64,000 nucleotides of DNA from Mytilus edulis (taxonomy: Eukaryota). The stretch is from contig NC_092346.1 in the NCBI RefSeq assembly GCF_963676685.1, forward strand, positions 35,464,001-35,528,000. Direction: 5' to 3'. The notes beneath the pieces were generated by a model. It was given only the letters and a program-made list of their open reading frames with translations. It searched no databases and was not told the origin of the DNA. Each line of letters opens with the position of its first letter. The first letter of the stretch is position 1. Shown one piece after another: positions 56,701-64,000 of the stretch. The translations under genes were made by a program, and so were the position numbers.

Positions 56701-57434
56701 TTCGAGCACAAAATGTGTACTCTTAGTACTGAATAAAGTAATATCGCTGAGCAGTTCCCTGGAAGACGATTATACCATATATTTTCCATAAGCTCAAAAG
56801 CAAAACAATAGCATTTTATTATGGCTGTATAAGTCAACCTATCAGCAGTTATATCATCCAGCAAGTACCTTACATGAAACATGTGTTATACCTTTTTCTC
56901 ATGAAATACAATTTTATAAATCCCTCCCAAAGGATTCAATGTAAAACTAAGCCTACTGTTTCCAGTCATAATAGTCTGCTGATCAGAACCAGGATAATCT
57001 CAGCTGACCACCAGTAACTAACCAATATCAGCAACTACCAATGACGACAACTGTATCTAAATGGAACTTTTTAAAATATATACTTATGACATGACCAAAA
57101 AAATGAGCCCATGTTACAGAAAAAAAGTCAAGCCAAAAAGATCATCTTAATCTCATAAAAATGGTTCTCAGCTTGGAAAATATTAAAACAGTGATATTTT
57201 AGAGTGTGATTAAAAAAATAAGTCCAGAAAATAAAACTGTTTGAGAAAATCGGAACTGCGGTGAAAAAACGAGTCCAACTTGTTCAAGACTCATTTATTT
57301 ATAAAAATCTTGCATCACTTAATATTTCTCAAATATAACTTTCATATCACAATTCTTACAAATGATCTATTGTTCTATTATATATAGACCGTTCTTAATA
57401 AGATTGTAATGAATATTCATATAAAATCGAAATC

Positions 57435-57450
57435 GAGGCTAAGCTAGGCA
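57435..57450 (+). promoter_or_regulatory. Subterminal motif GAGGCTAAGCTAGGCA, also at 61912-61927 (minus) and 62041-62056; candidate promoter or transposase-binding site
   Basis: An identical 16-mer sits 16 nt upstream of the exonuclease ATG and 15 nt upstream of the transposase ATG. Confidence 0.55.
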
Positions 57451-57466
57451 ATTATTTGTAAACAAT

Positions 57467-59485
57467 ATGGCAGCATCAACAACAAACGGTACCTCATCAA
57501 AAGATCTCTCACATTTACCAGATATATCATTTGCTTTTGTGGAAGAATTTATAAGAAAACACAGCCAGAGTTCAGGAAAAGAACAAATGACAAAAGGATT
57601 CAAATACTACAGCGAGGAATACGTACATTCTGTGTCAGGTAAGGTCACTTGTTATGTTTGTTTACGAGGTGCACGTGAGAAATATTGTCTTTACACAAAC
57701 CATTATTTTACCAGGAAATTATAACTTTTGACCATTATTTGTGCAGTAAAAATCATTATTCATATTCTTATTGTTTTAGTCTGCAGACTGCTGATTTATT
57801 TAGATAATTAACTCCGTATCTTGATCCTGATAATCACGTATAAATCAGCTGAATAAGTGAAGGGTAGCAATCATGCATGAACCCTCTTTGACAGAAAGTA
57901 TATTATTATTAGTAACAGATAATTAAACTTGTTTACATAGTTTTATATGTTAAATTTTATAGGTGTTTAGTATAAAAAAATGTATTTTTTTTTACAGTGC
58001 ATCCTGATGATACTGGGTGTTTGGTCAAAGGAAAATGTTTTAGATCACAAAGAAAAAACGAGTCTCCACATGATGTCAAGGTAGGCATACATTTTATTTC
58101 ACTTGTTGTACTAAACATAGAATATAAATATTAACTTTATATCCTCCTCAAAAAATATTTTGCAAATAAACAATTTCATACAATAATAAAGAACTTTACA
58201 TATTAATCAATACATGCATATGAATATAATAAAATTAGTAACAAAATATTAAACTAATACATCTCAAATTCTTTCACAGATCATGCTAAATGGAGGGCAG
58301 ATTGAATATTCATTCTGTACATGTACAATTGGACAAAGTGGTTACTGTGGACATGTGTCAGCCCTTCTTTACCAACTTGCACACTACAAATCCCTGAAAA
58401 TGAAGTTAATTCCAACAGATATTGCGAAAACATCTTTACCACAGACGTGGCATGTTCCACGAGGCCAGAAATTACATGGTGAAAAGGCTGATAACATCGT
58501 TGTGCAGGGTTATGACCGTGAGGATCCCCAACGAGCTACAAAGGGAATAAAGTCTACCCTATATAATCCTATTCCTGGGAACGAAGCTATTAATGTCAAT
58601 GACTTATTGGTCCAGGTTAACGATATGGACATTTTGTTTGACACTGTGGTGACAGAACACAGGACAGAACTAGTTCAAACTGAATTTGGTAAATTCCCTA
58701 AAGGAAGCATTCTCAGTTATCAACAAAAAATGGCAAGTGACTACCTCCTCAACTTAATGGATAATAATTCATTTCCAGAATTACCATTGAAAAATGTCAT
58801 GATTAACAATTTTGAAACTGTTCTCATGAAAGACCAGTTAAAAAAGTATGACTCCTTGAAGGTTACACTGCTGGAAAGTAAAGAGATTGAGGAAGGAACA
58901 CGTCTTCAATCGAATGATCCTAAATGGCATAAAATTAGACGTGATCGTATCACAGCATCACATGCAGGAGAAATAGCCAAGAGAAGAGCTGATGGGGCTA
59001 AACTTGCTGAACGCTTGCAGTCAACTAGACATGTTCAGACAGCAGCTATGAAACGTGGTATAGAATGTGAGGTTACTGCAGCCCAAGCCTATAGCAAGGT
59101 GATGAATGACAATGTCAACTTATATCCATGTGGTGTGATTGTAAATCCCTGGTGTCACTGGCTTGCAGCTACCCCAGACAGAAAAGTATATGCACCTGAT
59201 AGAAATCAACCACATGGTTTGTTGGAAATAAAGTGTCCAAACACTGACCAATTATCAAGCGTCAAATGTCTTCATTTAATTGACGGGGAGCTAAAATTGA
59301 AAAAAAATGATAACTATCATTATCAAATACAAATGCAAATGGCCGTGACAGGATTAGACTGGTGTGACTTTTTTGTTTGGCTTGAAAATGATTCACATTT
59401 GGAAACAGTTTATTTTGATAGTGAATTTTGGGAAGCTACAAAAGACAAACTTGATTTGTTTTTCAACACTTATTTTTTGAACTAA
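57467..59485 (+). CDS. SWIM zinc finger + YqaJ/lambda-exonuclease-like (PD-(D/E)XK) protein, 486 aa. Exons 57467-57638, 57998-58080, 58280-59485
   Basis: GT-AG introns with matching phases. SWIM motif CTCTIGQSGYCGH. YqaJ motifs TRLQSNDPKWHKIRRDRITAS, GIECE, LAATPDR, LLEIKCP and YHYQIQMQMAVTG. No internal stops. Confidence 0.9.
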
Positions 59486-59545
59486 ATTATGTCAATGTAT
59501 GCATGTATAAATGAAACACTATGCCAACTTTTAATTAGTGATGAT

Positions 59546-61896
59546 TTAGTTTTTTTGCTTAATTAATGGTCTTCTGAACAGAGTCAATAGATTAGCAACA
59601 GTCCATAACTGATTCACAGATCCAGCTAATGAAAGTGGGACTGTATACTGTAAAAGTCTATATTCTTTAGCCCGCTTTATATGCCGCTCAACATGTATTC
59701 TTAAGGATGCAATTTTTTGATTGTCCTCAATTTGTGACGGTGTAAACTGTCCATCACTGCAAAGGAAGTGTGGCGTAGCTATTGACACACCTGTATCTTT
59801 AAGTAATTTATTTAAAATAAACCCTTTATCCGCCATTATTTGGTCTCCTGGTTCTAATAAGTCAATAAGTCCACTATGCTTGGTAATTTCTATGTCAGAC
59901 ATACATCCAGAATATAATGCAGAAATGAAAGTGATAGCACCATGTGGCGATATTCCGACCAGTCCTTTCCAGGTGTTGTGACTTTTGTATGATGAAAAGG
60001 TTTTTGACGCCAAGGCTAAAGAAGAAGGTCTTTCTGTAAAAATTTCGGTACAGTCTATTATCACACGCGTGTTAGGGTACAGAAGTTTGAAGTCCTGTGG
60101 CATATGCTCCATTATTTTACCCCTACTAGGCCAGATATTAATGCCACCCAATATGAAATATAAATAATTTGTCCAAGTTATTATTTTTCTGCTTACTGTT
60201 GATGCATGAATGTTAAATCTTACTGACAAGTCCTCAGTCAGAAAACCACACCTTAACCTACATAAAAACATAAACAGTTCATCAATAGGATCCATTGACT
60301 TTGGACGTCCTCTATTGCTGGGTTCCTCAGAAGACTTATAATACACAGTTTTCATTCTTGTTGCAGTAGGCTTGATAGCAGAATAGAAAATTAAAAATAA
60401 ATCAAAAGTTGGAAATCCAGTATAAAACTCTATCATTTCATGGTCGTAAGAAAATCTTGTTACTCCAAACCGTTCCATTTGTAATTTCTGGTTTAAACTT
60501 GCCAGCTCATAGGTCTTGTCTTTAAGTTCAGAGTCCTTTTGCTGTACCACATGTTCAAGTTTCTCAATTTTCTCAAGACAGTCAGCATGAATGTTAGAAT
60601 CACAACTCCTGTCAATATAAAATAAATGTATTAAGTAATGGTATAATCTCCTTAACATTAAAAAGGGGGAAGTAGTTTTAAAGCACACTGTGTTTCCTTT
60701 TGATTTTATAAAATATTTTTATGTTTTCTTTTCAATTATTTTGAAAATAATTATATACATAAAAAAAACATGCAAGTTCAATTTAAATTTGGGTTTGTAC
60801 ATTTAATATTTTTTTATTTTGAATTAATACATTCTGATAACTAAACTTACATGTCATTTTCATGATCAACACTTTGTGAATTGTGAACTTCACAGACACT
60901 ATCCTCTACAACCATTTCATCTTCATCTTCACGATCGTCAACTTTCATCTTTTTGAAAAGGGACTGTCTTGATGTGGGGGCCTTTCTGCTGCTTTCATTT
61001 AATTTCCAATCAAAGACAGATGGAACAGCTTCTGGTTTGAGACATTTTCTGTTAGGAGTCCAGCGGTAATCTTCCTTCTTGAAATGTTTGGAACAAACCA
61101 CTGTATTTCCTCCAATCTGAAAACAAACACAAATTAATAGGTTTCGTTCTTGTATTTATATAACATTGTTCTTAAGTTATCATATTTATAATGTAGACCA
61201 GTAACATATTTATAAAAAAAATAAGAAGTTTATTCTTTTTATTATTTAATAAATAAAAGTATTTGCAATTTACAAATGTGTTTATAGGTAAATTATAATT
61301 TTAACAGAATGTTGAGAATGAAATTGTTGGTGTTGTTTACGAATACATCACATTATTTTCATTCTATATGACCATGACGACAGACGTGTTTGAAGTTCCA
61401 AATGCATATTATATTTATAACAGTCTCGTACACACAGTGATAAAAACAACATGGGATAAATTAATTACACATATCTACAGATATGGGATGAAGGAAAAAT
61501 CGCTATCAACATGTGGTAACAGTTTGACATGTAACACTTAAACAGATGTTTTACGGCTAAAATAAAAGTATTGTTAAAGAAAAATATTGTTGAACAAAAT
61601 CTTATAGTCTGTCTGAAACTAATTATTGAAAATTGGGACAGGTATTACATATAAAACAACATTATCGGCTTCTATGAAAAGTGTAAACAAATGCACGTGT
61701 TTCTAGTATTTACCTTGAAAAATTCACCTTCATCTCTACGGATTGCAACAATCCACTGTTTTCTTGTTAGCATTTTCTTTTCTGATGGTATATGATGAAA
61801 ACTCAACTCTTTATTAGTTCTGGCATTGCCGTTACAAAATGGCACACAACAGTATTCATCTCTTTGTTTACTTGTTGATGCTGCTGGAGAAGCCAT
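59546..61896 (-). CDS. THAP + HTH + DDE (DDE_Tnp_4, Harbinger/ISL2-like) transposase, 503 aa. Exons 61896-61714, 61116-60851, 60608-59546
   Basis: THAP C2CH domain: YCCVPFC..FHHIP..W..AIRR/IGGNTVVCSKHF..LKPEAVPSVF. Coiled coil, then HTH (LFMFLCRLRCGFLTEDLSVRFNIHASTVSRKI). Catalytic IIDCTE, MADKGF and RIHVERHI. Splice phases are consistent. Confidence 0.92.
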
Positions 61897-61991
61897 TATT
61901 GATAATACCGGTGCCTAGCTTAGCCTCATTTTCGAAAATTGAACTCTGGGTCAATGCATACATGAATAACTTTTAAGAACCGTCTATAATA

Positions 61992-64000
61992 AGACCGTTC
62001 TTAATAAGATTGTAATGAATATTCATATAAAATCGAAATCGAGGCTAAGCTAGGCAATTATTTGTAAACAATATGGCAGCATCAACAACAAACGGTACCT
62101 CATCAAAAGATCTCTCACATTTACCAGATATATCATTTGCTTTTGTGGAAGAATTTATAAGAAAACACAGCCAGAGTTCAGGAAAAGAACAAATGACAAA
62201 AGGATTCAAATACTACAGCGAGGAATACGTACATTCTGTGTCAGGTAAGGTCACTTGTTATGTTTGTTTACGAGGTGCACGTGAGAAATATTGTCTTTAC
62301 ACAAACCATTATTTTACCAGGAAATTATAACTTTTGACCATTATTTGTGCAGTAAAAATCATTATTCATATTCTTATTGTTTTAGTCTGCAGACTGCTGA
62401 TTTATTTAGATAATTAACTCCGTATCTTGATCCTGATAATCACGTATAAATCAGCTGAATAAGTGAAGGGTAGCAATCATGCATGAACCCTCTTTGACAG
62501 AAAGTATATTATTATTAGTAACAGATAATTAAACTTGTTTACATAGTTTTATATGTTAAATTTTATAGGTGTTTAGTATAAAAAAATGTATTTTTTTTTA
62601 CAGTGCATCCTGATGATACTGGGTGTTTGGTCAAAGGAAAATGTTTTAGATCACAAAGAAAAAACGAGTCTCCACATGATGTCAAGGTAGGCATACATTT
62701 TATTTCACTTGTTGTACTAAACATAGAATATAAATATTAACTTTATATCCTCCTCAAAAAATATTTTGCAAATAAACAATTTCATACAATAATAAAGAAC
62801 TTTACATATTAATCAATACATGCATATGAATATAATAAAATTAGTAACAAAATATTAAACTAATACATCTCAAATTCTTTCACAGATCATGCTAAATGGA
62901 GGGCAGATTGAATATTCATTCTGTACATGTACAATTGGACAAAGTGGTTACTGTGGACATGTGTCAGCCCTTCTTTACCAACTTGCACACTACAAATCCC
63001 TGAAAATGAAGTTAATTCCAACAGATATTGCGAAAACATCTTTACCACAGACGTGGCATGTTCCACGAGGCCAGAAATTACATGGTGAAAAGGCTGATAA
63101 CATCGTTGTGCAGGGTTATGACCGTGAGGATCCCCAACGAGCTACAAAGGGAATAAAGTCTACCCTATATAATCCTATTCCTGGGAACGAAGCTATTAAT
63201 GTCAATGACTTATTGGTCCAGGTTAACGATATGGACATTTTGTTTGACACTGTGGTGACAGAACACAGGACAGAACTAGTTCAAACTGAATTTGGTAAAT
63301 TCCCTAAAGGAAGCATTCTCAGTTATCAACAAAAAATGGCAAGTGACTACCTCCTCAACTTAATGGATAATAATTCATTTCCAGAATTACCATTGAAAAA
63401 TGTCATGATTAACAATTTTGAAACTGTTCTCATGAAAGACCAGTTAAAAAAGTATGACTCCTTGAAGGTTACACTGCTGGAAAGTAAAGAGATTGAGGAA
63501 GGAACACGTCTTCAATCGAATGATCCTAAATGGCATAAAATTAGACGTGATCGTATCACAGCATCACATGCAGGAGAAATAGCCAAGAGAAGAGCTGATG
63601 GGGCTAAACTTGCTGAACGCTTGCAGTCAACTAGACATGTTCAGACAGCAGCTATGAAACGTGGTATAGAATGTGAGGTTACTGCAGCCCAAGCCTATAG
63701 CAAGGTGATGAATGACAATGTCAACTTATATCCATGTGGTGTGATTGTAAATCCCTGGTGTCACTGGCTTGCAGCTACCCCAGACAGAAAAGTATATGCA
63801 CCTGATAGAAATCAACCACATGGTTTGTTGGAAATAAAGTGTCCAAACACTGACCAATTATCAAGCGTCAAATGTCTTCATTTAATTGACGGGGAGCTAA
63901 AATTGAAAAAAAATGATAACTATCATTATCAAATACAAATGCAAATGGCCGTGACAGGATTAGACTGGTGTGACTTTTTTGTTTGGCTTGAAAATGATTC
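61992..64000. mobile_element. ISL2EU-type transposon copy 2 (head-to-tail tandem, truncated by the window edge)
   Basis: Matches 57386-59394 at a constant offset of 4,606 bp. I saw no differences by eye, including in the homopolymer runs I checked. Confidence 0.9.
62073..64000 (+). CDS. SWIM-YqaJ exonuclease, copy 2 (exons 62073-62244, 62604-62686, 62886->64000; incomplete)
   Basis: Same sequence and splice sites as copy 1. Confidence 0.88.

Follow-up and report, generated by a model that had tools for sequence, protein, structure and literature searches.

How does an apparently intact cut-and-paste transposon come to lie beside an identical copy of itself, with six base pairs between the two? 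The question is raised by the right-hand end of a 64,000-nucleotide stretch of the Mytilus edulis genome (C3:35464001-35528000, hereafter the window; feature coordinates are window positions unless prefixed C3, C4, C11 or C975), where an element of the ISL2EU group occurs as a head-to-tail pair. To our knowledge, double insertion at a single site has so far been the explanation for tandem transposon dimers in animals, and we know of no eukaryotic transposon group other than ISL2EU that carries a lambda-type exonuclease. Tandem transposon dimers are also seeds of satellite DNA. The arrays described here fail the diagnostic of double insertion, yet they occupy normal target duplications with empty alleles, which points either to multimers that move as units or to a dedicated end-joining step.

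A repeat search of the window found a direct repeat with a start-to-start spacing of 4606. The first unit, E1 (57386-61985, plus strand), is a complete 4,600-bp ISL2EU element of subfamily A, as delimited by repeat search, script, genome search and copy alignment. The second, E2, lies on the same strand, has its first 2,009 bp in the window (61992-64000) and extends as a whole copy over C3:35525992-35530591 (script, genome search and alignment). The right end of E1 is separated from the left end of E2 by the 6-bp spacer ATAATA (61986-61991), a junction that is unique in the genome. An earlier note, made from the letters of the window, had described a complete element, this spacer and a second copy at an offset of 4,606, and all of this holds; the identity between the copies, without a mismatch over the 2,009 bp in the window (script), extends to the full length (100%, 0 differences over 4,600 bp in the copy alignment). 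Its term “head-to-tail concatemer” was right as to orientation and too generous as to number, as the genome search found no third copy to the right of E2 and the array is a dimer. The left terminal inverted repeat of E1 (57386-57398, plus strand, AGACCGTTCTTAA) pairs at 12 of 13 positions with the right one (61973-61985, read on the minus strand as AGACGGTTCTTAA), which is its near-complement.

The flanks run in the order tatatAT-E1-ATAATA-E2-ATAcccc. The immediate 2-bp flanks are AT/AT for E1 and TA/AT for E2, in agreement with the earlier reading that copy 1 is bounded by AT/AT and copy 2 preceded by TA, and the pair as a whole is bounded by AT/AT. This target-site duplication (TSD) has its left copy at 57384-57385 and its right copy beyond the window, at C3:35530592-35530593. 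A plain tandem or segmental duplication with a period of 4606 is excluded, because the spacer cannot be divided into a right and a left part that fit both outer flanks, and an in-register succession of flank, unit, unit and flank is absent; the 3 bp to the left of E1 are TAT and those to the left of E2 are ATA. The view that the repeated unit is the element without host flank, for which segmental duplication is a poor fit, is thus sustained. The existence of the head-to-tail pair as assembled is confirmed.

Recurrence of the arrays

Nine full-length copies of this family (family 1) occupy six loci of the 1.37-Gb genome, and five of the nine copies, at two of the six loci, stand in arrays. The DNA search missed three of these copies; protein searches concur on nine. 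They form two subfamilies about 1% apart, subfamily A consisting of E1, E2 and three solo copies, and subfamily B of one solo copy and the three units of a trimer. With so few copies in a genome of this size, chance adjacency of E1 and E2 is negligible, and the two have in common four variants that the alignment shows in no other copy of the family. The solo copies, four in number, all carry a clean TSD of 2 bp, AT in three cases and TA in one.

The trimer spans C11:1997125-2010915 (at ~2.0 Mb) and consists of the head-to-tail units T1 (C11:1997125-2001720), T2 (C11:2001723-2006318) and T3 (C11:2006321-2010915). Both of its spacers are TA (2 bp), its two junctions lie 4,598 bp apart, and its outer flanks read gtgtAT-...-ATagat. 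The units differ from one another by 4-8 substitutions and two indels, and T1 and T2 have in common four derived changes relative to T3. Because the trimer belongs to subfamily B and the dimer to subfamily A, arrays arose at least twice independently in family 1. A genome-wide pattern of any element end, 0-30 bp and any element end, which also covers head-to-head and tail-to-tail arrangements, the inverted repeats being nearly symmetric, returned three junctions only, one ATAATA and two TA, all of them head-to-tail with intact ends. The junction pattern had no match in metagenome contigs.

A third array, belonging to another family, was traced on C4 through same-strand transposase and YqaJ matches 14.5 kb apart. 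Its two 14.5-kb units (C4:41035441-41050011 and C4:41050018-41064494) are 98.6% identical and are separated by the 6-bp spacer TTTATT. The unit ends, GGCTTGCACC...GGTGAAAGCC, with an inverted repeat that begins GG, mark a distinct ISL2EU family (family 2), the solo copies of which are flanked as aAT-...-ATt. The flanks of the C4 dimer are non-canonical throughout, with each left end preceded by TATT and the array bordered by AAAAGC on either side. This dimer is the older and less clean case, and it points to capture or joining by host repair, not to normal insertion. No other junction of family 2 was found in the genome, and a check of about 100 transposase and about 100 YqaJ matches with scores, roughly one third of the candidates, gave no further close same-strand pair beyond the three arrays. 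The earlier note had reckoned with an outcome in which the second copy at C3 has a TSD of its own and no other tandem junction exists; E2 has no such 2-bp duplication, and the C11 trimer and the C4 dimer are both present.

One copy of the element in another individual is damaged. A contig of sequencing run X12 joins 59607 to 60379, omitting 771 bp of the transposase exon and carrying the 7 foreign letters GGCATTA at the join. An internal deletion of this kind is expected when break repair after excision is interrupted.

Outer flanks and empty sites

Both family-1 arrays are enclosed as wholes by AT on either side, and their inner spacers, TA and ATAATA, differ from this AT. An empty site for the trimer is found on haplotig C975, whose minus strand matches the left flank up to C975:14773 (99%) and, from C975:14774, the right flank (97%). 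These matches share exactly 2 bp; the second haplotype of this individual is therefore empty, with a single AT. For the dimer, the empty site comes from a paralogous region 25 kb downstream, in which the left flank matches to C3:35546178 and the right flank from C3:35546177, again with a 2-bp overlap; this site and C975 were compared by match coordinates only. In addition, an X12 contig from another individual follows the left flank to 57386 and continues with 30 letters, 26 of which match the sequence after the ATA that closes E2. Given these single-AT empty sites, each array together with one AT is a single insertion relative to the empty state, and ATAATA was not at the dimer site before insertion.

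For the family-1 arrays we therefore reject both plain tandem duplication and double insertion at the present sites. When a second insertion beside a solo copy was worked by hand at every position of the empty-site sequence, it gave the spacers A, AT and ATA or T and TAT, with shifted outer flanks. The earlier note had also raised the idea that the element may use its own ends as targets. The simple version, in which the TSD is hit a second time, predicts an AT spacer, and it falls to the observed TA and ATAATA and to empty sites with one AT only. Two sources for the spacer letters were also tried and rejected. Spacers drawn from the local flanks do not fit, as the base before E2 is A and the left flank ends in T, and the TA of the trimer fits neither flank. 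As for filler copied from nearby, the tail of the dimer spacer plus AGA, TAATAAGA, recurs at element positions 11-18, which is not significant (P 0.06-0.19), and neither is the corresponding result for the trimer spacer (P 0.17-0.27).

The neighbourhoods of both arrays are themselves repetitive. The last 120-180 bp before E1 (57200-57385) recur five times downstream at a spacing of 20-27 kb and with 77-90% identity (C3:35546058, 35565681, 35593349, 35616110 and 35642198), so the dimer lies in one unit of a local segmental repeat. Past the end of the window, ~190 bp of the right flank of E2 (L002:6213-6396) are part of a dispersed repeat of very high abundance, for which a first look gave ~2,000 candidates at ~80% identity. 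In the left flank of the trimer, L035:6596-6654 holds a ~47-bp motif that forms long minisatellite arrays at C11:1.606, 3.158 and 4.222 Mb, and comparison of the empty haplotig (C975:13813-14774) with C11 shows a ~370-bp tandem duplication in the right flank of the trimer site.

Competing accounts of array formation

We read the C3 dimer as a real head-to-tail pair of a young, apparently autonomous cut-and-paste ISL2EU element, of a kind that forms arrays recurrently in this genome. At just short of an even chance, we favour an origin in which the junction of right and left end was made elsewhere and the multimer was inserted as one unit, counting together the routes through an earlier chromosomal site and off the chromosome. 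The right end would be joined to the left end through a short spacer, away from the present site. Along the first route, two copies inserted 0-2 bp from each other, at an earlier site on a chromosome, would leave their TSDs (TA in one case, AT+AA+TA in the other) as the spacer, and the adjoining pair would then undergo composite transposition. Along the second, the ends of excised copies would be joined off the chromosome, in a circle or concatemer, with the same end state. The transposase would use the outermost two ends and place the whole multimer into a single T-AT-A target with one AT duplication, and later growth from dimer to trimer could take place where the array stands. TA is an alternative TSD of the family, seen in one solo copy, and ATAATA parses as AT+AA+TA. 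Moreover, the last T and the first A of the element rebuild its preferred T-AT-A target at both of its own borders, and hits 0-2 bp apart would therefore be favoured. The data show the array structures, the TSD around each whole array, the empty sites, the disagreement of spacers and TSD, the units as sisters and two separate events in family 1. The site and the manner of the junction are what we infer here, and the movement as a unit we infer from the spacers only.

Several observations weigh against this origin. Neither a donor site nor a circle nor a solo allele came to light. The transposase would have to pass over the intact inner ends (two or four) while moving 9.2-13.8 kb. In the alignment T1 and T2 group against T3, so that at least the third unit is a later addition, and this shows some growth in place at the least. 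The C4 dimer was not placed by normal transposition, because it lacks canonical AT flanks. Independent data for the C3 dimer came from four sequencing runs, all as Logan contigs, and none of their listed pieces and joints bridges 61985-61992; another 210 pieces are outside this list, and a junction unitig of ~66 nt is too short to appear in it. The four variants private to E1 and E2 are likewise not present in these runs. Finally, end joining in place with a short filler would yield the same picture.

This last process is the core of the main rival, which we consider rather unlikely. A solo copy at an AT site would be cut by the transposase after replication, at its right end on one sister chromatid and at its left end on the other, and the host would join the two with some filler, the outer TSD staying as it was. 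The outer AT/AT and the single-AT empty site fit this equally well, and the identity of E1 and E2 and their private variants count for it too. The first three letters of the dimer spacer, ATA, equal the right flank, the last four of the family-2 spacer equal the four letters to the left of the first family-2 unit, and the deleted X12 copy with its 7-nt filler shows break repair acting on the element. However, the trimer spacer and the base before E2 are unlike the local flanks, the copied-filler test was not significant in either array (P 0.06-0.27), and two identical TA spacers require an extra step. Unequal crossover as the source of the middle unit of the trimer is unlikely, as it fits only with an exchange in the first 55 bp, ~1% of the unit.

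Within the favoured origin, the off-chromosome route can be given a specific form, that of the earlier note, which we regard as improbable: excised copies would circularise at a right end-spacer-left end junction, in the manner of bacterial insertion sequence minicircles and (IS30)2 dimers, and multiply as concatemers with the help of YqaJ, and the transposase would insert the resulting multimers. An array-level TSD with unrelated spacers, a trimer spacer of the same length as the TSD, exclusively head-to-tail orientation and spacers that are alike within one array are all consistent with such a route. The exonuclease gene is intact and its catalytic motif present, and the function of the second (YqaJ) protein of ISL2EU is stated in the literature to be not known (PMC4482050, PMC4122938). 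Conversely, neither circles nor free junctions were observed, annealing of 2-nt overhangs does not predict a spacer of 6 bp, and the trimer units are not star-like, T1 and T2 standing together against T3. The transposase is IS5/PIF-like rather than of a copy-out family, and the survey of open reading frames and domains found no gene for a single-strand annealing partner inside the element. A broader proposition, that ISL2EU, alone among eukaryotic cut-and-paste elements, regularly passes through such a junction, in a circle or a dimer of sister copies, that the exonuclease promotes this step or the subsequent multiplication and that multimers are then true units of transposition, seems to us similarly improbable, and a link between YqaJ and array formation would be purely speculative. 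If the junction-passing reading were true, this would be a eukaryotic counterpart of bacterial insertion sequence (IS) dimer and minicircle transposition.

A false duplication of one element during assembly of C3 is very improbable. The identity of E1 and E2, the unbridged ATAATA junction in the listed independent contigs and the absence of a haplotig for the dimer locus could all be read in this way. However, a new 6-bp junction cannot come from collapse or expansion unless there are reads that carry it, and the diverged units of the trimer (4-8 differences), with a separate empty haplotig, show that arrays of the family are real in this genome. Least credible of all is double insertion at the present site, as for the P-element and hobo dimers (PMC5932611), followed by unequal exchange: the rebuilt T-AT-A at the element borders makes hits into its own TSD plausible and the trimer spacer has TSD length, but the junctions are unlike the outer AT, ATAATA is missing from the empty sites, where AT stands once, and none of the hand-worked positions reproduces the observed flanks.

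Among known systems, the junctions of bacterial IS-dimers and minicircles are the closest mechanistic analogue, and P-element and hobo dimers together with Bari1 arrays the closest eukaryotic cases. In macrotransposition, or composite transposition via outer ends, as in maize Ac/Ds and bacterial composite transposons, two copies and the intervening DNA move together and produce one new TSD. Those cases carry host DNA between the copies, whereas here just 2-6 bp separate them. With the bacterial systems ((IS30)2, IS911 and IS21) the arrays have in common ends abutted via a very short spacer and a strict left-right orientation (PMC9333248, PMC3299598), and bacterial IS-dimers arise between sister copies and act as units (PMC9333248, PMC3299598). 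In contrast, the bacterial transposases are of the copy-out/paste-in kind and their junctions are proven to be reactive, while ours is IS5/PIF-like, in an animal host and known from sequence alone. By the yardstick of IS junctions, in which the spacer has about the length of the TSD, the spacers measure 2 bp, the TSD length, in the trimer and 6 bp in the dimer.

Tandem dimers of P-element and hobo in Drosophila come from double insertion, and their junction holds the 8-bp TSD of the site, equal to the outer TSD (McGurk and Barbash 2018, PMC5932611). They resemble our arrays in being young, polymorphic head-to-tail dimers of intact cut-and-paste elements with intact inverted repeats, which can grow by unequal exchange. 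They differ in that the spacers here do not equal the outer AT and a single AT stands in the empty site; the second copy therefore did not hit the present site. For the Bari1 arrays in Drosophila melanogaster heterochromatin, an origin from circular transposons by rolling-circle copying has been proposed (PMC8834629, PMC5932611). These too are arrays of a cut-and-paste transposon, with junctions that lack the TSD of the site and with two independent occurrences. Bari1 units, however, lack terminal nucleotides, there are partial units at the edges, and one array has a ~500-nt flank duplication, whereas the family-1 arrays show none of the damaged ends, partial edge units or abnormal TSDs expected of rolling-circle copying: all of their ends are intact, their edges fall exactly at element ends, and their TSDs are canonical and 2 bp long. 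New here are the nine copies at six loci, the C11 trimer, the C4 dimer of family 2, the AT/AT around whole arrays and the single-AT empty sites. The array loci supply junctions, alleles and natural substrates for probing the role of the ISL2EU exonuclease.

The element and its genes

Judged by its sequence, the element at C3 is a typical ISL2EU transposon of the PHIS superfamily. This group is defined by an AT TSD, by genes for a THAP-HTH-DDE transposase and a YqaJ protein, by a size of ~4.8 kb and by its occurrence in animals (PMC4482050, PMC4122938), and our element has a 2-bp TSD, a three-domain transposase, a YqaJ gene, a 13-bp inverted repeat, a length of 4.6 kb and a bivalve host. The assignment to ISL2EU with transposase and lambda-type exonuclease made in the earlier note is thus supported by domain matches (PMC4482050). 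There are only two deviations from the norm: the inverted repeat begins AG instead of the usual GG, and the target context is T-AT-A, as against the published A-AT-T (PMC4482050). The family appears to be intact and autonomous, young and probably active. The YqaJ main exon is open in all nine full-length copies and the transposase main exon in all five of subfamily A; in the four copies of subfamily B, one TGA cuts the transposase frame to 377 amino acids, with the match starting from residue 3.

The predicted YqaJ/lambda-exonuclease-like gene (57467-59485, plus strand; exon map by tblastn) has exons at ~57467-57679, 57994-58092 and 58277-59485 and a product of 486 amino acids (P0001). Its large exon matches PF09588 (2.5e-18). 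P0001 aligns to the solved structures of LHK-Exo (3syy, 8e-9) and lambda exonuclease (1avq, 2e-3) with the PD...E-I-K motif retained, and it has a weak SWIM match. Homologues of this protein occur widely among bivalves, for instance in Ostrea, Saccostrea, Pinctada and other Mytilus, and the sequencing runs that contain the stretch come from several organisms and a “mollusc metagenome”. The transposase gene (59546-61896, minus strand; placed by domain search and open pieces) has its ATG at 61896, THAP-coding pieces within 61914-61675 and 61155-60850, and a main exon at 60688-59546 with HTH_Tnp_4 and DDE_Tnp_4. The minus-strand open reading frames match DDE_Tnp_4 (PF13359, 5.1e-38), HTH_Tnp_4 (PF13613, 7.3e-13) and THAP (PF05485, 2e-7). 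The DDE_Tnp_4 domain places the transposase in the IS5/PIF-like class, and not with the IS3, IS30, IS21 or IS256 types.

Two smaller features lie within the element. A 24-nt subterminal inverted repeat (92%) at 57427-57450 and 61912-61935 stands just upstream of both start codons, and the two proteins therefore open with similar peptides (MAAST... and MASPAAST...). Between YqaJ exons 2 and 3, ~95 bp at 58121-58215 (element positions 736-830) match many dispersed loci at 74-78%, and this piece is probably a small dispersed repeat in the intron.

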